Positions 8,322 through 60,710 of a stretch of DNA of 64,000 nt are shown piece after piece. The stretch's first letter is position 1; every line of letters starts with the position of its first letter. The stretch is taken from sequence record NC_041878.1; one strand, 5' to 3'. The position numbers and the translations under genes were made by a program. The notes beneath the pieces are model-generated. The model saw nothing but the letters and a program-made list of their open reading frames with translations. It did not search any database and had not been told where the DNA came from.

Positions 8322-10046
8322 ATGAATAAAACCAAAAATGTTCTACAAGTGGTTGTCAATTTTGAAACTGCTGAATCAGTACAAGAGCTTAAAAATCTAA
8401 TCCAATCTAAAGTTGGTGATGTTGATATTGTTCGTTACTCAGTTAATCCAACCAACGTAGTTCTTTATGTTCTTGCTGAACCGTCAGCCAATCTACATAC
8501 TATTCAGGTAGAAGATACAGGTAAAACTTACAGTACTATCAATGTAGTCGAATCTATTGTAGAAGACGGTACTAAAGAATATACAGGTACTGTTCAAGAG
8601 GCATTTGCTGAAGTTCAAACTTCTGAACCAAAACCTGCCAACGTTATCATCTTTGAACACGATCCTAAGCTCGTTGCATTACTTAATAAAGAATATAAAC
8701 TATCAAACGTTAGTGTTTATGATGGTTTGGTTTCTATCAGTACTGAAGATGAGATTGTGCTAATTGAACCACAAGTTAATGTGACTATTGATTATAGTAC
8801 TTATAATGAGAGTACTGGTACAGTCAAACTTGTTCAAACCAAAGATGAAGAATCTTCTATAATTGAAGCTTTTAACAATCGTGTTGCAGAAATTCAAGAA
8901 GAAGAATTGTCTAGTCGTGATTTTTCTGAATTAGTAAGTGCAATTGACAATATTGATAATGACCGATTATCATTAACCGAACAGTTTAAGGATAGTATTT
9001 TTGGTCCAGGTATTGCTAAAGCAGAAGACTATGCACGTATGAGTACCGAACGCAATACTATTAATCTAATGTCTGACATTATGAATACGTTTAATGCTAT
9101 TGAAAACGATTTACCTTACAAACTACCAGTTGAAGCACTTGCTAAGATGGATGAACATGAACGCAACGTGCATGAAATGAAAAACATTCTTCTAAATGTA
9201 CAAGGTTTAGGTGAAGAAATTTCTATGGCAGCAGCATTGAAAGAAGACGTGTCTCATACAACAGTAAAAGAAGTAGCTGGTGCGTCACAATCTGGATTTG
9301 TTGATGAAGATGATGATGATATAGAATCTCTATCAGCTTATAGTATTGGTGATACCGTAGTTGAAACAGTAACTCTAAAAGTTGCACTAATTAGCTTTAA
9401 TGCTTTTGATGAGTATGCTGCAAATCACAATATTGTTGGTTGGGATCTATTCACACCAACTACACTACTAATCAAGTACATGGAAGAAGGTGTAACTTCT
9501 GAAGAAAAAATTAAGAAATTTCATGAGATGATGGATAGTCTTGATACTGGTTGGGTACAGAAAGTTTCAGATGAAACTAAATTCTTATCAGAATTCAAGC
9601 AAGTACTAGACCGTGATGTAACACAAGAGTTCTTAGCTCGTGTTAAGAAACACAATGTCTTTGTTCGTGAAAATCTAGCGAAAATTCGTTCTGCACTTCT
9701 AGATATGGAAAAAGACTACGAAGAACTAAAAGATGAAGTCAATCTAACCATCGATTGGGAAAATCTAACCGCATTTGCATCCAAAAAGGAACGTATTGAG
9801 CATCGTGTAAGAGGTGTTCAAATGGTGTTCTCTGGCTCTAATCGTCCAGATGCAAACGTTGTAAGAGTTGATTCTGAATATGAAGGGAAAGATTTTTACA
9901 TTCCATTTAGTTTGATTACTGATGAAATTCGTGAAAAATATGTACTAGATAACGAACTTCTATACATTGAAAATGTTCCAGACTTCGCATTCTATGAAGT
10001 ACCTGTAAATGGTCATGTCATGATTATTGAAAAAACTGACCTATAA
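8322..10046 (+). CDS. large acidic hypothetical protein
   Basis: ~574 aa ORF. Confidence 0.8.
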   Translation: MNKTKNVLQVVVNFETAESVQELKNLIQSKVGDVDIVRYSVNPTNVVLYVLAEPSANLHTIQVEDTGKTYSTINVVESIVEDGTKEYTGTVQEAFAEVQTSEPKPANVIIFEHDPKLVALLNKEYKLSNVSVYDGLVSISTEDEIVLIEPQVNVTIDYSTYNESTGTVKLVQTKDEESSIIEAFNNRVAEIQEEELSSRDFSELVSAIDNIDNDRLSLTEQFKDSIFGPGIAKAEDYARMSTERNTINLMSDIMNTFNAIENDLPYKLPVEALAKMDEHERNVHEMKNILLNVQGLGEEISMAAALKEDVSHTTVKEVAGASQSGFVDEDDDDIESLSAYSIGDTVVETVTLKVALISFNAFDEYAANHNIVGWDLFTPTTLLIKYMEEGVTSEEKIKKFHEMMDSLDTGWVQKVSDETKFLSEFKQVLDRDVTQEFLARVKKHNVFVRENLAKIRSALLDMEKDYEELKDEVNLTIDWENLTAFASKKERIEHRVRGVQMVFSGSNRPDANVVRVDSEYEGKDFYIPFSLITDEIREKYVLDNELLYIENVPDFAFYEVPVNGHVMIIEKTDL

Positions 10047-12335: not shown

Positions 12336-12672
12336 TGAAGTACTTCACGAATTAAATTCAATCGTAGATGGATGGTCTTTATCATTTGACACTACTGAAT
12401 ACGCAATTCAATTAGGTGATTCATCTGGAGCAGCTTATGTCTTTTTTAATCAGACCCTATTGATTGAAATGACATATTGGACACACTCAAAAACTTATTC
12501 TGCATTACACCGCAAAGTTGTATTTGGTGATCGCCAAAATGCAGAAAGTGGCGAACGTGAATCTGCATTCGATGCTTATATTGGCTTGCAATGGATAATT
12601 AGAATGAAAGCCAAAGAATTATTAAACATTATTAATGAAATGAACAAGGATAGAAAGAATGGCAACTCGTAG
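12322..12672 (+). CDS. hypothetical protein
   Basis: Co-oriented ORF. Confidence 0.7.
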   Translation: MKTADEVLHELNSIVDGWSLSFDTTEYAIQLGDSSGAAYVFFNQTLLIEMTYWTHSKTYSALHRKVVFGDRQNAESGERESAFDAYIGLQWIIRMKAKELLNIINEMNKDRKNGNS

Positions 12673-13815: not shown

Positions 13816-13831
13816 TATAAGGTAAAGAACA

Positions 13832-14851
13832 ATGTCACATTTTACAGTACTAGTACATCTGACTGAAGAAGAAGTTAAGAATAACATCCAAGAATGTGCA
13901 GCAATCAAACTGCAACCATATCATGAATTTGAATGTACTGGAGTCAAAGATCAGTACGTGGTAAAAGTTGATGAAACTGATGAAAAGTTGTATGATTACA
14001 ACACTGAAACAGTTGAAGCTGTTTATGATGAAGATGGAGCACTTCTTGGTTCTAAGTATTCTGAAGCATGTAAACGTTTCTGGCAACGTGCTGGTTATGG
14101 ATATTCTTCTGAAGATAAATTTGAACTTCCAGAAGGTTATACACTACGTAAAACTCCATTAAACGAAATTTATACCTTTGAAGGTTTCCTTCGTGATTGG
14201 CACGGTTATAGTTTAGATGGAGAGTATTCATCTTTAGAAGATGGTAAGTTTTATCGTTTTACAAACCCAAATGCTAAGTGGGATTGGTGGACTGTAGGCG
14301 GTCGTTGGTCTGGTATGTTCCTTGATACTAATGGTCAGAAGCAAGACATTATTCAGAAAAAAGATTGGGATCTTGCTGGTGAAGCTACAAAAGCAATTAC
14401 AGACTTTGCACCGTTCTTTGACCGCTTTGAAGAACACGCTGATAAATTCGACGGAGTGGTATTCATGTCATGGGATGAATGCTGTGATAAGTTTAAAACT
14501 CCAGATGGTAAAACTGATTATAATTCTGCTCGTGAATTTTATCATAACCAAGAGTACAAGAATATTTTAAAAACCGTGTTCAGTTCTGTCGGTGATGGCG
14601 AGCATGAATGGCTACTACATGACCCTAATAACTTCTATAACGTATCACGTGAAGACTTCATGAAAGCTCGTATCTTCAATCGCATAGGCACGTTCGCTGT
14701 ACTGGATGACGCTGGGTGGCACGAGAAAGGCTCTATGGGCTGGTTCGCGTGTGTGAGCGATGAAAAGGCAGATTGGAACCAAATTTACCTTGACAAAATC
14801 AACTCCATCCCTGATAATGATTACCTAGTTCTTGTGGATTGCCACATTTAA
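13832..14851 (+). CDS. conserved phage hypothetical protein
   Basis: NPNAKWDWWTVGGRWSG and LVLVDCHI motifs. Confidence 0.85.
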   Translation: MSHFTVLVHLTEEEVKNNIQECAAIKLQPYHEFECTGVKDQYVVKVDETDEKLYDYNTETVEAVYDEDGALLGSKYSEACKRFWQRAGYGYSSEDKFELPEGYTLRKTPLNEIYTFEGFLRDWHGYSLDGEYSSLEDGKFYRFTNPNAKWDWWTVGGRWSGMFLDTNGQKQDIIQKKDWDLAGEATKAITDFAPFFDRFEEHADKFDGVVFMSWDECCDKFKTPDGKTDYNSAREFYHNQEYKNILKTVFSSVGDGEHEWLLHDPNNFYNVSREDFMKARIFNRIGTFAVLDDAGWHEKGSMGWFACVSDEKADWNQIYLDKINSIPDNDYLVLVDCHI

Positions 14852-29124: not shown

Positions 29125-29915
29125 TGCACTTTTTGATAATGGATAAGTACTTTAACGAAGATGGATTTCGTATCATGAAAGAATACATGGTACAGAATAA
29201 TATTCCTCATACTTCAGTTAAGCCTGTGCCATTTATTAACATATTCGTACCAGAAGACGTTAATGATTATTCTGATTCTACATATGAAAAGTACTTCGAC
29301 AAAAGCATTCCTACTATGTCATTTGGTAGTTATGCATTAGCTCATCAGCTAATTGAAGCCGGTTATACACCTGGTGGATATATTAATGATAATCATAATA
29401 TTGAAATACAGATGCGTGAATGGGGTTCTGAGAATTTCTTAAATGGTAATTGTATCTTCACTACTATGGGTGAAATTGAGAATCCTGGTTGGGATAATAT
29501 TTTCATTCGCCCTGTACATGATACTAAAGTTATGGTTGCTCGTGTAATGGAACAACGTAATTTTAATGCTGAAGTTGATGCATTCTTTTCATTCTACGGT
29601 GATCCAGAATTTGAAGTACTATTAGCAGAAGCACAAGAAATACTGGCAGAATATCGGTTATTCATTGTTAACGGTAAAGTTGTATCACATTCTTTATATA
29701 AAGTTCGTGGAACATTTTGTATCAATCCTGAAGTGCCAAAAGAAATTATTGATATTGCAGAAGAACTCTGTACTAAATGGGTTCCAGCCGATGCATTTGT
29801 TATGGATTTTGCGGAAACAGATAACGGCTTTAAAGTACTGGAAGTTAATAACATAAATTGTGCTGGATTTTATGCAGCCAACATACCAGCAATAGTTGAG
29901 GCATTCCGTGCGTAA
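29124..29915 (+). CDS. ATP-grasp domain protein (paralog of 21298-22125)
   Basis: IFIRPVHDTK, EYRLFIVNGKV, MDFAETDNGFKVLEVNNINCAGFY. Confidence 0.8.
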   Translation: MHFLIMDKYFNEDGFRIMKEYMVQNNIPHTSVKPVPFINIFVPEDVNDYSDSTYEKYFDKSIPTMSFGSYALAHQLIEAGYTPGGYINDNHNIEIQMREWGSENFLNGNCIFTTMGEIENPGWDNIFIRPVHDTKVMVARVMEQRNFNAEVDAFFSFYGDPEFEVLLAEAQEILAEYRLFIVNGKVVSHSLYKVRGTFCINPEVPKEIIDIAEELCTKWVPADAFVMDFAETDNGFKVLEVNNINCAGFYAANIPAIVEAFRA

Positions 29916-31484: not shown

Positions 31485-31893
31485 ACATGATGCAGTACTT
31501 CGAAAAACAGTGAATCGTTCAACTGCTTGTTATTTCAAATTCGGAGTACAGGAACATTTGGAAGTAAAAATTACTGAACATGGGCTTGTTGAATTTAAAT
31601 ATAAGCCTAATGTGTATGATCACTATCATCTGAATTATGATATTAAAAATGATTCACTAATTCGATATAAAACATCTGTATCATATGCGGGTCAAAATCA
31701 TAATCGTGCTGCCCCGCAAAATGAGTTAGTACTAAGAAACTTAAAACGTCTTTGTACTGAAGAAGGATTTTTTCAAGAAATGACACGTCAGGACTTGACA
31801 AATCTAGAAGAAGCTGATATTATACGTTTCTTAGATTTGGTAGATAAGATTATAAAAATCAGGAACGAAGCAAATGACAAAGCCAGTACTTGA
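31387..31893 (+). CDS. hypothetical protein, EExxFQxxT family
   Basis: TEEGFFQEMTRQD. Confidence 0.65.
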   Translation: MDTRLVQDLWFRKLEIKVSNILGFKELLDKFFKHDAVLRKTVNRSTACYFKFGVQEHLEVKITEHGLVEFKYKPNVYDHYHLNYDIKNDSLIRYKTSVSYAGQNHNRAAPQNELVLRNLKRLCTEEGFFQEMTRQDLTNLEEADIIRFLDLVDKIIKIRNEANDKAST

Positions 31894-32302
31894 ATATAAG
31901 TGTTATGTACTTCTACGTGAAGACCTTGAGATGCCTATTGGGAAATTCTCTGCACAGGTTGGTCATGGTTTAGACCAAGTTTGGGGTCAGTACAATACGT
32001 ACAAAGAACGTAGCCGTAAAGAAGATAATGAAGACCTAATTATGCCTGTCGCTAACTTTGAAGGTTGGCATAAAGAAGGTCGTCGTAAGATTATTCTTCG
32101 TATCAAAGATGAAGATCAAATGAATAAGGTGAAAGCCAAAATTCAGGAACAGATCGACGGTGAACAGTACCATCCTGGTTATTTTGTTCATGACATTTTT
32201 GATTACGGTTTCAACTTCTTCAACGGTCTAACACAAACTGGTTTGATTATCTATCCGAACAAAGAAGAAATCAAAGCAGTAAAAAGGTTGCGTTGTTGGT
32301 AA
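31874..32302 (+). CDS. peptidyl-tRNA hydrolase, Pth2 type
   Basis: YVLLREDLEMPIGKFSAQVGHG, RKIILR, DYG...T. Confidence 0.8.
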   Translation: MTKPVLEYKCYVLLREDLEMPIGKFSAQVGHGLDQVWGQYNTYKERSRKEDNEDLIMPVANFEGWHKEGRRKIILRIKDEDQMNKVKAKIQEQIDGEQYHPGYFVHDIFDYGFNFFNGLTQTGLIIYPNKEEIKAVKRLRCW

Positions 32303-36975: not shown

Positions 36976-37500
36976 ATGGATTTGAAAAAACCAGAAATCA
37001 TTTCACGTTTGAATGCAATGGCTAATAAGTACCAACAAGTAGTAAAAGATTCATTTCGTTTGTTTAATTACGATTTTGAAATCAGTTGGACAGGACATTT
37101 CATTGACCGTTTCATTCAGCGTTACCCGACTTATGAAGTAGCTCAAGGTATTGTTGAACCAATGCTGGATTTGTTCTTTGAAAACAAAAACGAACTGATC
37201 TTTAGTGGTGTTGATGGTTTCAAAGAGTACAAACTTGTAAACATTCGTCATTCGAACTTACAACGTCAAAATGTAATTGTTATGACAGTTGAACGTATCG
37301 ACAATGTTTTTAAAATCACGTTTGTAACGGTGTATCGTAAAACAACATCGTACATTAACAACAATCCAACTGAGTATGTACAGCTTCATAAGAAACCACG
37401 CTTTTTTGTTCCAGGTGTAGTTGGTAAACGTTTAAAGAAGTTTGCTGAAAATAATGAAGTGCCTGAAGAACTGAAATGCATTAGCAAACTTTGGAATTAA
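36976..37500 (+). CDS. hypothetical protein (HFIDRF motif)
   Basis: Co-oriented ORF. Confidence 0.75.
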   Translation: MDLKKPEIISRLNAMANKYQQVVKDSFRLFNYDFEISWTGHFIDRFIQRYPTYEVAQGIVEPMLDLFFENKNELIFSGVDGFKEYKLVNIRHSNLQRQNVIVMTVERIDNVFKITFVTVYRKTTSYINNNPTEYVQLHKKPRFFVPGVVGKRLKKFAENNEVPEELKCISKLWN

Positions 37501-37501
37501 T

Positions 37502-37699
37502 ATGCAAAAAGAACCACGTTTGACGCCTAAATATTGGGCTGCACATGATTCACGTACTGATGATCTACTAATCAGTACTATGTTTAAACACCGTCAAGAT
37601 ACCTATGATCAACTGGTATCAATGTTCGGGGAAAATTGGGAAGAAACACATCCTCATTTTCAAATAGATTTGGTTGAACTCAAACTAGTTCAGCAATAA
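37502..37699 (+). CDS. hypothetical protein
   Basis: Co-oriented ORF. Confidence 0.7.
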   Translation: MQKEPRLTPKYWAAHDSRTDDLLISTMFKHRQDTYDQLVSMFGENWEETHPHFQIDLVELKLVQQ

Positions 37700-37708
37700 T
37701 GATCACTG

Positions 37709-37958
37709 ACCGTTGTTAGGATGTAGGCTTAGAAGCAGCCACATTTAAAGAGTGTCGAGGACGATCCGTAATTGGGAAACATATCACAAGTACCAAACGT
37801 ATAAGTTCAGGGGAAGAAAAGACCGGATACAGTTGTATTAATATGGTATACACGGGCGGCGTATACTTAATGACATGAATCGTAGGTGATATTACGTGAA
37901 GCGTTAGATGTTAATACAGACCCTTAGAGACTTTGGCGTAACAGCACACTATCAACGG
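37709..37958 (+). ncRNA. 23S rRNA GTPase-associated-centre (uL11-binding, H42-H44) mimic with ~181-nt insert
   Basis: AGGATGTAGGCTTAGAAGCAGCCACATTTAAAGAGTG...GCGTAACAGCACACT matches 23S nt ~1054-1105; closed by CCGTTG/CAACGG. Confidence 0.8.
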
Positions 37959-38002
37959 CTTTTTAATTGAGATTTTATTAACCATAGAAAGAGGAAATAA
38001 AA

Positions 38003-38341
38003 ATGGCACAATAGAATGAAAAAACTTGGATTTACGTATTTGTTCGCACGGATCTTCCGATTGAACAAATAGTAGTACAATCAAACCACGCAGCTTATGA
38101 AAGCGGCTTGGCCTTCGAAAATAACAGTACTGAGACTAGTTCTTTAATTGTTATTTCGTGTAAGAATAAACATAAGTTACAAAAAGCATATGATGAACTC
38201 AAAGATTCTGGTATTGACTTTGTTCAGTTCCATGAACCTGATTGGGATTATGGCTTCACCGCCTTTGCTAGTGCTCCTGTAACTGCTGAACAGCGTAGTA
38301 TCTTCCGTAAGTATCAATTATTCAAGGGAGGTGCTAAATGA
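38003..38341 (+). CDS. Pth2-like protein with in-frame TAG at codon 4
   Basis: SD GAGG, ATG GCA CAA TAG AAT...; IYVFVRTDLP..QIVVQSNHAA, FHEPD..YGFTA. Confidence 0.65.
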
Positions 38342-38904
38342 TTTATCCTAACACTTTCGAAGAATTACTACACGTAATGCAGAATACAGAACAAATGAAA
38401 GATCTTAGTGTACATGCACATGGTCTGATGGTTGTTGAGCAATATAAAGTACTAATTTCTGAATTAGACACTGGATAGGGCGATTCTGTACTACTTGAAG
38501 TATATGGTAAAATCAAAGATAAGATTCTACCAGATGAAATAGTACTACGATACCAGGAATATCATGATTGTGGTAAACCATTGTGTCGTGTAGTTGATGA
38601 AGATGGAAAAGTACATTTCCCTGATCACGCTAATATTAGTGCTGATACTTGGAAGCACTTATTCCCTGAAGAAACTGTCATTCAAGAGTTAATGCGAAAG
38701 GATATGACTTTTCACATGGCAAAATCGGAAGATTTTGAATCCATCTGGAATGATCCGTTAGCACCAACTTTATATTTGACAGCGTGGGCTGAAATACTCG
38801 CGAACTGCACAATGTTTGGTGGACAGGATAGTACATCTTTTAAAATCAAAAAGAAAAAACTAATCCAAGCGGGTAAAAAGTACTTAAACTCTTTGCCTAA
38901 ATAA
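38338..38904 (+). CDS. HD-domain protein with in-frame TAG (38476-38478)
   Basis: SD GGAGG, ATGA overlap; SVHAHG...TG*GD...YHDCGKP...HFPDHA. Confidence 0.7.
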
Positions 38905-38949
38905 AAATGTATTGGCACTCATCTGAGTGCCACTATTAAGGAAACTGTA

Positions 38950-39381
38950 ATGCAAGATCCTATTTTGAAGTTTCAGAAATATTGTTCACAAACTGATAAA
39001 CTTATTGATGTGTGTCAGATTCGTTTGCAGTACTTTACACCAGAAGCAATCACTGAACTATGGGATTATGAAGTAGACCATAAAGGTGATTGGAAACGTG
39101 CATTCAAATGTGGTGAAATAAATTCACGTGAACATACTACCAAAATATTGTTCGGTGTTAATGGATATGTTTACTCTTTTGCTAAGGTATTTGCTAAAAG
39201 TGGAAAACATCATCCACATGATCATTTGGTTGCATCATTTAGTGGATATGGTGATTGTACTGGCTCTACTATTATTATGGATCTTGCACAGTACTCTAAT
39301 GCAGCTTCCTCCGCATTGAAACCGATCATTGATGATTATGATCTGCTGATGCAAAAATATAATGAAATTAATGTAACATAA
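38950..39381 (+). CDS. hypothetical protein
   Basis: SD AAGGA. Confidence 0.75.
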   Translation: MQDPILKFQKYCSQTDKLIDVCQIRLQYFTPEAITELWDYEVDHKGDWKRAFKCGEINSREHTTKILFGVNGYVYSFAKVFAKSGKHHPHDHLVASFSGYGDCTGSTIIMDLAQYSNAASSALKPIIDDYDLLMQKYNEINVT

Positions 39382-39390
39382 GGAAATGTC

Positions 39391-39585
39391 ATGATTACAG
39401 AAAACGTGACAATCTATGATAACCTAAATGAAAGTTATGGTTCTCCATATGGTTTCAGTTATCATGGGTTTATCTTTGTCTTCGAAACTGCTGAAGAACG
39501 CGATGCGTGGATTCAGGATTGTACAGTAGAAGATTTAGAATACATCATCAATGAAAGTGAAGAAGAAATAAACGCCGAGGGCTAA
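39391..39585 (+). CDS. hypothetical protein
   Basis: SD AAGGA. Confidence 0.7.
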   Translation: MITENVTIYDNLNESYGSPYGFSYHGFIFVFETAEERDAWIQDCTVEDLEYIINESEEEINAEG

Positions 39586-39586
39586 A

Positions 39587-39937
39587 ATGGGTTCGAACGT
39601 AGAAGCAGAAGTTAAAGTTAAACTCCTTAAACAACCACGTGGTGTTAAAGGAGCAACAATTGATATGTCACAGTTACACAAAGATCTTGAAACAATTGTA
39701 ACTGATGAAAGTTTTTATATTCAACGAGATACTTTTGTTGCACAGCAAGAATGTCGCTGGTATTCGATTGAAGAAGATATGCGTAAACTTTCAGCGATGT
39801 ATCCAGGTGTACTATTCACTGTAAAATCAGATGTACCTGATTATGGTGAAGATCCAGTTGTTCAGTACTTCTACGAAGGTAAAACACATAAAGCAGTAAT
39901 CACATATTCGCCATTTGACGAATCATTGTTAAACTAA
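39587..39937 (+). CDS. hypothetical protein, tandem paralog A
   Basis: WYSIEEDMRKLSAMYPGVLFTV. Confidence 0.75.
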   Translation: MGSNVEAEVKVKLLKQPRGVKGATIDMSQLHKDLETIVTDESFYIQRDTFVAQQECRWYSIEEDMRKLSAMYPGVLFTVKSDVPDYGEDPVVQYFYEGKTHKAVITYSPFDESLLN

Positions 39938-39947
39938 TAGAGGAATA

Positions 39948-40283
39948 ATGGGATATTACACAAACTACGAAATTTCTATTGATAAACATAATTCTGAAAT
40001 AGATGTACATAGTTCCGATTTTGTTGAAATTGTAGTTAATCGTTTAAACGAACTTTCTGACTACGGATTCGATGAAGACCTATCTCAGTACGGTATTAAA
40101 TGGTACGATTGGGAAGAACATATGAGGCAACTTAGTTCTGAATTCCCTTCAGTACTGTTCACCGTTAATGGTGTTGGTGAAGAAGATGGTGATATTTGGC
40201 GAGCATACTTTACTAATGGTAAAAGCCAGATTGAACAAGCACGAGTTTCTTTTGCACCGTTCGACGAAACAAAATTGAAGTAA
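39948..40283 (+). CDS. hypothetical protein, tandem paralog B
   Basis: WYDWEEHMRQLSSEFPSVLFTV. Confidence 0.8.
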   Translation: MGYYTNYEISIDKHNSEIDVHSSDFVEIVVNRLNELSDYGFDEDLSQYGIKWYDWEEHMRQLSSEFPSVLFTVNGVGEEDGDIWRAYFTNGKSQIEQARVSFAPFDETKLK

Positions 40284-41994: not shown

Positions 41995-42068
41995 GCCTTT
42001 GTAGCTCAGCGGTAGAGCGGGGATCTCTAAAATCCTTTGTCGTGGGTTCGAATCCCTCCATCGGCACA
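41995..42068 (+). tRNA. tRNA with CTA anticodon (amber suppressor candidate), Phe-like body
   Basis: GGGAT-CTCTAAA-ATCCT; canonical D arm; 2 acceptor and 1 T-stem mismatches. Confidence 0.7.
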
Positions 42069-42371: not shown

Positions 42372-42483
42372 GCATAAATGACGGAATTGGTAAACGTAGA
42401 GTCTGACAATAGCGAAAGCGACGATAGGACTTCGGGAGTAGCCGTGAGGTTCCCTTGTAGGTTCGAATCCTGCTTTATGCACC
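42372..42483 (+). ncRNA. class II tRNA-like RNA with anticodon loop replaced by ~22-nt insert
   Basis: GCATAAA/TTTATGC acceptor, D and T arms intact; GC-GAAA-GC in place of anticodon. Confidence 0.6.
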
Positions 42484-60269: not shown

Positions 60270-60383
60270 AGATTAACAAACAATAAGGTAAATTATATGC
60301 TATAGAATCCTAGTACTGGTCCTCCTGATAAGTTTAATTCAGAACAAACTACTAAATTAAACAATATCAAAAAGGAACATATT

Positions 60384-60710
60384 ATGTTAAACAAAGAACA
60401 ATACATTACTGTAAAAGCAACCTGGAAAAAAGTAAAAGAGCACACTGTACACGAACACATTATCTATAATGTACTTCGGGGTAAAGAGGCTGATGAAGGG
60501 TTTGTAGCTTTAACTGATTGGGGTCGTTTGAATGCAAGTGATAACAATCCGTGGTTCAACTATGATAACGCAGTACGCGAAATTCACTATCAGTTGAATG
60601 CTAAACGTTATAACTATGAAGGTACAGTAAAACATTATTCCGATGTTTTCGGCATTGATTTAACACCTGAACTAATTGCAGAAGTACTACAAGCAATTAA
60701 GTTCAAGTAA
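60384..60710 (+). CDS. conserved phage hypothetical protein
   Basis: SD AAGGA; HIIYNVLRGK. Confidence 0.75.
   Translation: MLNKEQYITVKATWKKVKEHTVHEHIIYNVLRGKEADEGFVALTDWGRLNASDNNPWFNYDNAVREIHYQLNAKRYNYEGTVKHYSDVFGIDLTPELIAEVLQAIKFK

Follow-up and report, generated by a model that had tools for sequence, protein, structure and literature searches.

Gut phages that use genetic code 15 (crAss-like phages, Lak, Garnet, Topaz, and others) carry suppressor tRNAs, and it was proposed that their recoding acts as a post-transcriptional timer; the literature on stop-codon recoding is concerned with such genome-wide changes of the code (bioRxiv 10.1101/2021.08.26.457843). In these phages, tens to hundreds of genes are recoded, mainly late and lysis genes, and the coding density collapses under the standard code. 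Here we describe a locus in a 64,000-nucleotide stretch of sequence record NC_041878.1 ("the window"; unless another sequence is named, positions are those of the window and features are on its plus strand). Two adjacent genes, one for a Pth2-like protein (gene 1) and one for an HD-domain protein (gene 2), each contain an in-frame amber codon (TAG), and a tRNA with anticodon CUA (tRNA-CUA) is encoded nearby. We believe that these are best read as a cassette of a suppressor tRNA and two amber-gated enzymes of tRNA ends, and that this cassette is probably widespread and conserved. Positions 37000–40000 of the window are 100% identical, in a 3-kb comparison, to Pectobacterium phage vB_PcaM_CBB (KU574722; CBB below), a jumbo myovirus of the genus Mimasvirus with a 378-kb genome. 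Window positions are KU574722 positions minus 248000, so the gene pair is at about 286.0–286.9 kb of KU574722.

As in the code-15 phages, a phage tRNA-CUA would serve in-frame TAGs in a host that uses the standard code, and TAG is depleted as a terminator. But CBB has a standard-code genome with only two or three gated genes, and the cassette involves one enzyme pair across distant lineages, with the TAG at codon 3–4 and the tRNA usually adjoining. Gene-specific amber gating may be an early stage toward the genome-wide recoding of TAG. Two classical phages have features in common with this locus. In phage Q-beta, a host tRNA reads UGA and extends a minor fraction of the coat protein to give A1, which is a needed product. 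In both cases a stop codon read by a tRNA would yield a needed protein, but the tRNA of the Q-beta system belongs to the host. The bar minigenes of phage lambda are two-codon mini-ORFs (open reading frames) that are tied to the biology of peptidyl-tRNA hydrolase. The likeness is in the combination of a phage mini-ORF with peptidyl-tRNA hydrolase, but the bar stop codon is TAA and no gene follows in frame.

A synthetic "leak dampener" uses a suppressor tRNA for feed-forward control (Ho et al., NAR 2021, PMC7969014). There, the suppressor tRNA is co-expressed with a target that contains silent nonsense codons, and output needs both, as we propose for the phage. The leak dampener was engineered, while the phage cassette would be a natural and evolutionarily conserved counterpart. 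The same kind of tRNA-CUA is also known from other large standard-code phages: in XacN1, 18 amber stops were read through in silico and no targets were found (PMC5852040), and in RsoM2USA, the suppressor tRNA was noted and no targets were named (PMC8504454). In contrast to these orphan suppressor tRNAs, a target is identified here, and this includes RsoM2USA, where the gene is not annotated. The PTH2 proteins of jumbo phages have been discussed in relation to tRNA repair and ribosome rescue, with no mention of amber gating or suppressor tRNAs (Iyer et al. 2021, PMC7824862). The paper on CBB itself reports 33 tRNAs and an ordinary Pth (CBB_392) and mentions neither a suppressor nor an amber codon. 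In the full-text literature that we searched, whose coverage leaves out most subscription journals, we found no description of a suppressor tRNA with a gated Pth2/HD cassette.

Gene 1 (38003–38341) has 112 codons, including the TAG at codon 4 (TAG1, 38012–38014), and ends with the TGA at 38339–38341. A Shine-Dalgarno sequence, GAGG (37991–37994), lies 8 nucleotides 5' of the ATG at 38003, and a purine-rich Shine-Dalgarno sequence with equal spacing precedes the ATG-X-X-TAG start in the related phages GAP32, XbC2, Kaldavass, BF, and Yen9-04. The frame begins ATG GCA CAA TAG AAT GAA AAA ACT TGG ATT TAC GTA TTT GTT CGC ACG GAT CTT CCG, which translates to MAQ*NEKTWIYVFVRTDLPIEQIVVQSNHAAYESG..., and between TAG1 and the TTG at 38108 it contains no ATG, GTG, or TTG. 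This TTG is the start of the GenBank coding sequence CBB_406 (38108–38341) and also of the ORF in a mechanical list. Since there is no in-frame start before it, both of these leave out the domain's first strand and helix. Gene 2 (38338–38904) has 188 codons, including the TAG at codon 47 (TAG2, 38476–38478; like TAG1, read directly in the sequence), and ends with the TAA at 38902–38904. It has its own Shine-Dalgarno sequence (GGGAGG, 38326–38331), and its ATG (38338–38340) overlaps the TGA of gene 1 (ATGA). Gene 2 reads in a single frame as ...SVHAHGLMVVEQYKVLISELDTG TAG GDSVLLEVYGK...YHDCGKP.... In GenBank, it is split into CBB_407 and CBB_408, and the 34 codons between them are not annotated. 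The original prediction, made from these letters alone, had described the Shine-Dalgarno sequence and ATG GCA CAA TAG start of gene 1, its in-frame Pth2-like continuation, the truncation of the domain by the ORF start at 38108, the ATGA overlap, and the placement of TAG2 between the first His and the HD motif; all of this can be read in the sequence. The CUA tRNA that it placed about 3 kb away is at 41995–42067, 3.1 kb downstream of the gene pair.

We think it likely that genes 1 and 2 form a translationally coupled unit that is made only if the phage's tRNA-CUA decodes UAG as an amino acid. A ribosome would start at the ATG at 38003, and with release factor RF1 alone, a tripeptide would be released. 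If charged tRNA-CUA is available, then codon 4 would be read through to give a 112-residue protein with the Pth2 fold. Codon 47 of gene 2 would pose the same test again: if translation terminated there, the product would be a fragment of 46 residues without the HD motif.

Both TAGs are under constraint in ten CBB-like genomes (CBB, GAP32, XbC2, Kaldavass, BF, Yen9-03, Yen9-04, and three genomes from IMG/VR). We aligned the 902-nucleotide unit from nine of these and read Yen9-03, whose unit has 908 nucleotides, apart from the alignment. Pairwise DNA identities among the aligned units are 82%–96%, and TAG1 and TAG2 are unchanged in 10 of 10 genomes. The numbers of variable sites at the first, second, and third codon positions in the nine genomes are 12/9/54 for gene 1 after TAG1, 7/3/29 for gene 2 before TAG2, 11/4/21 for the 34 unannotated codons after TAG2, and 23/17/80 for the remainder of gene 2. 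These patterns indicate that translated sequence under purifying selection flanks both TAGs on each side. GenBank records truncate, split, or omit these genes, and the TAGs might be recent nonsense mutations in decaying genes, or sequencing errors. However, identical TAGs are found in independently sequenced genomes of phages from five host genera and in metagenomes, the substitutions downstream of both stops are biased toward third positions, and the gene 1 proteins of CBB and GAP32 are 99% identical. We consider decay or error to be extremely unlikely. The original prediction had doubted random decay and proposed to check homologues for sense codons: in all close relatives that we examined, both TAGs are conserved, with coding-type substitutions around them. 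Its suggestion that expression is conditional on amber suppression gains support from the conservation of the TAG beyond this family and from the constant presence of tRNA-CUA, as described below; its assignment of the pair to ribosome rescue is a guess.

To find distant Pth2-like genes, we used tblastn with the piece after TAG1 and then read the start regions in the DNA; further related loci were searched for with an alignment of four sequences and with single proteins. A start of the form ATG-X(1–2)-TAG followed by the Pth2 domain is present in at least 14 lineages, at 28–66% protein identity, and the start-proximal stop is TAG in every lineage that has this device. The gene begins with ATG CTG TAG in Salmonella phage Arash, ATG ACT TAG in Acinetobacter phage ME3, ATG TTG TAG in Ralstonia phage RsoM2USA (where the annotation lacks the gene), ATG AAA TAG in Tenacibaculum phage pT24, and ATG ACT CAT TAG in the 595-kb megaphage LR756511. 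Among our other numbered loci, the starts are ATG TTG TAG (L034), ATG AAA TCG TAG (L039 and L049), ATG AAA CTC TAG (L040), ATG CGA TCG TAG (L053), and ATG CAA TAG (L059). In our first scan of IMG/VR, all 15 loci had the device, and a new lineage (L027-29) has ATG ACG TAG. The residues just after the TAG and ahead of the first strand (K/H-T-W/Y) are conserved, so they must be translated, and in most lineages there is no start codon between the TAG and these residues. The base 3' of each such TAG is a purine, mostly A, and a purine in this position favors amber suppression in E. coli. Some family members lack the TAG: RaK2, which has an ordinary ATG, and L060, as well as XacN1 and RAS14 (HD-Pth2 fusions), Hallingskeid, and L058, in which the domain is not N-terminal. 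In a tree of the Pth2-like proteins (108 residues), 10 of the 18 inner branches are open, and because it is poorly resolved, it gives no count of the gains and losses of TAG1. We also considered a frameshift at the run of A's after TAG1 (ATG AAA AAA C, in another frame), but BF and Yen9-04 lack the run, so we rejected this.

Could the start be a mini-ORF instead? ATG-X-X-TAG might be followed by reinitiation, with no need for the tRNA, at a nearby and partly non-canonical start codon, and gene 2 might be made as two polypeptides that assemble. A start codon is found right after the TAG in L035 (ATG GAA TAG ATG, at position 10001) and in L038 (GTG CGT TAG ATG, at position 2768), and the TAG is followed by ATT in ME3, RsoM2USA, pT24, Yen9-04, L027, and L040. 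But in CBB, Arash, and L034, the codon after the TAG is AAT or AAC, and there is no start codon ahead of the conserved K-T-W. Reinitiation also does not explain why the stop is invariably TAG and never TAA or TGA, which are far commoner, or why tRNA-CUA co-occurs every time. In gene 2, the first start codon after TAG2 is 34 codons on and has no Shine-Dalgarno sequence, and those 34 codons evolve as coding sequence; furthermore, homologues are as a rule intact single chains or fusions. Overall, reinitiation seems improbable.

In the HD gene, the in-frame TAG is at three different codons, depending on the lineage. It is codon 47 in the CBB-like phages. In L027-29, L038, L039, L040, and L049, the TAG follows DLPP, 6–7 codons beyond the CBB position. 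In L053, it is codon 4 (ATG TAT GCT TAG), and the conserved N-terminus TFDDL...CYQFEN comes next. It appears that the HD gene gained TAGs repeatedly. In the family alignment, TAG2 falls in a variable loop that follows a conserved Gly, and intact homologues (ME3, Arash-like phages, L034, and L035) have V, I, S, F, or L at this position. Across 34 sequences of the HD-gene family, the invariant residues are H36, H84-D85-C-G-K, H105, D130, and H134; in CBB, TAG2 lies between the first His and HDCGKP. Because invariant residues flank the TAGs on both sides, a functional HD protein would need both parts.

The window contains 21 tRNA genes, one of which has the anticodon CUA (41995–42067; 58.3 bits to the tRNA model of Rfam). 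ARAGORN labels it as "Pyl," which reflects the anticodon alone. A syntenic tRNA-CUA is found in GAP32, XbC2, Kaldavass, BF, and Yen9-03/04, and every TAG-bearing locus, near or distant, has a tRNA-CUA on the same strand, from 30 nucleotides to 13 kb away. It is 30–60 nucleotides upstream of the gene pair in L035, L039, L040, L049, and L059; about 60 nucleotides downstream in L034; about 0.2 kb upstream in L038; 0.3–0.7 kb upstream in ME3, L027-29, and L053; 0.5–1.1 kb downstream in the Arash-like phages; 2–4 kb away in the CBB-like phages and pT24; 8 kb away in LR756511; and 13 kb away in RsoM2USA. L021 was a candidate for a TAG-bearing locus without tRNA-CUA, but it has a tRNA-CUA-like gene (13831–13904 of that locus) that ARAGORN missed. 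RaK2 and L058, which lack the TAG, have 8 and 12 neighboring tRNAs, respectively, and none of these has the anticodon CUA.

At the syntenic site in the CBB group, the tRNA-CUAs are of three sequence types that are unrelated to each other, but the TAGs do not change. This swapping of the tRNA suggests that the suppressor function is conserved and not one particular tRNA. The acceptor stem GCCUUUG/CAUCGGC is common to the tRNA-CUA of CBB, BF, Yen9-04, and an unrelated metagenomic contig, L034 (the tRNAs with this stem are at 41995–42067 of the window, 8572–8647 of L017, 8395–8467 of L015, and 3287–3362 of L034). All four share the non-pairs U4.C69 and U5.U68, and the other stems of these tRNAs differ by compensatory substitutions, which argues that the mismatches are selected and are not decay. 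The shared mismatched stem may be an identity or recognition element. In the tRNA-CUA of GAP32, all stems are paired. When we compared the tRNA-CUA of CBB to the phage's 20 other tRNAs, no amino-acid identity emerged, as the similarities are to several unrelated species at 70% identity or less. Presumably, A73 and U35 point to Lys or Gln, as the rules for E. coli would suggest. We infer from the sequence and from co-occurrence that tRNA-CUA is charged and decodes TAG1 and TAG2. Farther along in the tRNA cluster, a 110-nucleotide segment directly after tRNA-Leu(taa) (42372–42481) matches the Rfam tRNA model at 37 bits and is not called by ARAGORN; it could be a tRNA interrupted by an insertion or an intron, or else a tRNA copy that has decayed.

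The host might read through the TAGs by itself at a low level, because of a leaky context or because RF1 drops during infection, with the phage's tRNA-CUA kept for other purposes. A purine after the TAG and a very early position both weaken termination, and XacN1 and L060 show that tRNA-CUA can be present without these TAGs. However, this would not account for the strict co-occurrence and frequent adjacency of tRNA-CUA and TAG-bearing genes in at least 14 lineages, for the retention of the TAGs while the tRNA sequence was swapped, or for the lack of both TAG and tRNA-CUA in RaK2 and L058. We consider host-only readthrough to be quite improbable.

Another explanation is that the entire genome uses code 15, so that TAG encodes Gln, or that pyrrolysine is inserted. 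Large public protein collections do contain these genes translated with code 15, and so with Gln for the stop (P0001-P0021 and P0028; loci L033 and L034), where the DNA has TAG, and ARAGORN's label would seem to favor pyrrolysine. But in the window, as in seven related loci, ORFs are dense under the standard code, and the gain in ORF length is smaller if TAG is read as sense than in the controls where TGA or TAA is. Only two or three genes in 64 kb have an in-frame TAG, and TAG terminates four strong ORFs. As for pyrrolysine, the architecture of tRNA-Pyl is atypical, while tRNA-CUA is a canonical cloverleaf whose D loop contains GG, whose T-loop is TTCGAAT, and whose variable loop has 5 nucleotides (we did not search for pyl genes). 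Both versions are very unlikely. Genome-wide recoding is not found in these genomes; conserved in-frame TAGs together with tRNA-CUA are.

How many genes in the window might be gated? A scan for coding potential covered all 690 plus-strand TAGs and identified 16 after which 40 or more codons look like coding sequence. After inspection, three of the 16 interrupt coding sequence and have no usable later start: TAG1, TAG2, and the TAG at 60303. We rejected the TAG at 29893, which is followed by a TTG start and whose upstream "MQPTYQQ" belongs to a different frame inside the preceding gene. Among 126 strong plus-strand ORFs, four end in TAG (at 12672, 20017, 25290, and 62458). All four have a second in-frame stop 0–8 codons on, and two of the four are TAG-TAA tandems; such backup stops fit a cell with leaky UAG.

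The TAG at 60303–60305 is in what is probably a third amber-gated gene (60297–60710), directly after a tRNA-Gly. It begins ATG CTA TAG, followed by 134 codons, and the annotated start is the ATG at 60384. In GAP32, XbC2, and Yen9-04, the 26 codons between this TAG and the annotated start show synonymous changes and a conserved protein sequence, and in Kaldavass, the extension is covered by tblastn. The protein has no match in Pfam.

The first gene was originally described as Pth2-like and the second as encoding an HD domain. Structural comparison bears out the first assignment, and a sequence motif, a family profile, and a fold match suggest an HD-type protein for the second. The match of gene 1 to the Pfam family PTH2 (PF01981) has 18.8 bits (E = 0.002), below the gathering cut-off of 23. 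Within the gene 1 family, 10 of 21 proteins match PTH2 with E ≤ 0.01 (best 2.6e-4), and a profile of the family finds one Pth2 in PDB (E = 0.011). The AlphaFold model of gene 1 has a pLDDT of 92.8. Among the top 14 Foldseek hits for this model, 13 are archaeal Pth2, Pth2-family entries from structural genomics, or chains of human Bit1/PTRH2, and these have probability 1.00 and TMq of 0.62–0.79 (mostly 0.69–0.79). The best of them, to archaeal Pth2 and human Bit1, have TM of 0.73–0.79. The remaining hit, at rank 12, is Atu0240, whose function is unknown, and beyond the top 14, probabilities are under 0.25. As modeled, gene 1 has the Pth2 alpha/beta fold and belongs to a divergent subfamily, not cleanly to the Pfam family. 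The invariant residues of the gene 1 family are R11, D13, Q22, H25, E29, E74, and T82. CBB also has an ordinary PTH2, CBB_392 (31874–32302; 45 bits to Pfam), with no in-frame stop, so CBB encodes two Pth2-fold proteins, one of them gated. The gated protein shares the fold of an ordinary PTH2 such as CBB_392 and presumably acts on tRNA-linked esters by the same chemistry, but its subfamily is divergent and falls below the Pfam cut-off, and an HD protein always accompanies it, paired or fused.

Gene 2 contains the H...HD...D metal-binding motif of HD phosphohydrolases (PF01966). The two pieces of the CBB gene have no match in Pfam, and 8 of 34 relatives match the HD family (best 4e-6). A structural model of an intact homologue with 65% identity has a pLDDT of 93.9, and Foldseek's best match for it is a tRNA nucleotidyltransferase (3WFO-3WFS, TMq 0.6), followed by the generic HD phosphohydrolases YfbR, PhnZ, and OxsA (TMq about 0.4). 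The best match for a profile of the gene 2 family is also the HD-type region of the bacterial tRNA nucleotidyltransferase 3WFO-3WFS, with the HDxGKP motif in common.

The Pth2-like and HD genes are adjacent in nearly all lineages, and they are fused in both orders: Pth2-HD in pT24 and HD-Pth2 in XacN1 and RAS14. There are further Pth2/HD fusions in a 324-residue protein from Sphingomonas and in P0113. The adjacency, along with fusions in both orders, suggests that the two proteins are functional partners that act on the 3' ends of tRNAs. Given the predicted folds, we propose that, most plausibly, a Pth2-type aminoacyl- or peptidyl-tRNA hydrolase and a phosphohydrolase of the CCA-adding-enzyme type recycle or repair tRNA ends during infection. 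Candidate substrates are peptidyl-tRNA, N-acyl-aminoacyl-tRNA, and damaged or modified CCA ends.

Because the tRNA and the gated genes are on the same strand, often tens of bases apart, the arrangement resembles a feed-forward AND gate of the coherent type. The enzymes would be made only after the phage's tRNA cluster has been expressed, processed, and charged, and their output would be proportional to suppressor activity. With the TAG at codon 3–4, failed translation would be cheap. The early position of the stop may matter in another way, as release factors work inefficiently when the peptide is very short.

Several observations weigh against our proposal. A weak ribosome-binding site would be a simpler way to lower expression, and the selective reason for gating is unexplained. 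XacN1 and L060 have a tRNA-CUA and Pth2-like genes without the TAG, so the tRNA must have other roles or targets, and the dependence is one-way. The tRNA-CUA of CBB has three non-standard stem pairs (two of which are the shared U4.C69 and U5.U68) and no encoded CCA. In L035 and L038, the ATG directly after TAG1 makes suppressor-independent reinitiation possible, and the ATT after TAG1 in several lineages could permit some reinitiation in gene 1. And in BF, a 1-nucleotide deletion shifts the 26-codon extension of the candidate third gene out of frame, so that the internal ATG serves.

A more elaborate version of the gate, which we view as possible but rather unlikely, is that tRNA-CUA and the gated Pth2-like and HD-like proteins form a self-contained, mobile suppression cassette with feedback on the suppressor tRNA or its products. 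The enzymes would deacylate or release the suppressor tRNA or trim its 3' end, and would recognize it by the conserved U4.C69 and U5.U68 mismatches in its acceptor stem. The early TAG would act as a sensor of how much charged suppressor is present, and in this way the phage would set and stabilize the readthrough of UAG.

If the amber gate operates as we propose, then standard-code jumbo phages have natural targets for their suppressor tRNAs, and the engineered feed-forward gate has a natural version that extends from phages of Enterobacterales to a Bacteroidota phage and a megaphage. The comparison also exposes a systematic error in annotation: these genes are truncated, split, or missing, or are translated with code 15 and a spurious Gln. 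Finally, the link between a divergent Pth2 and an HD enzyme of the CCA-enzyme type, by adjacency, fusion, and gating, is a lead on how tRNAs are maintained during infection.

Two other elements are near the gene pair. The original prediction had associated the pair with a mimic of 23S rRNA just upstream. This intergenic element (37705–37790) had no match to an Rfam family at E ≤ 0.1, but its core of about 38 nucleotides (37717–37754) is 92–94% identical to E. coli 23S rRNA, with 7 matches per genome, all in 23S genes. The stretch is real and is conserved in place, just after the homologue of CBB_405, in GAP32, BF, XbC2, and Kaldavass; the link to the gene pair is not supported, as other genes intervene in GAP32 and BF. 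Directly 3' of gene 2 is a hairpin, GGCACTCATCTGAGTGCC (38913–38932), which is a perfect 8-bp stem (GGCACTCA TCTG AGTGCC) with no run of T's 3' of it on the plus strand. The hairpin is also present in GAP32 and is a possible 3' end or stability element.

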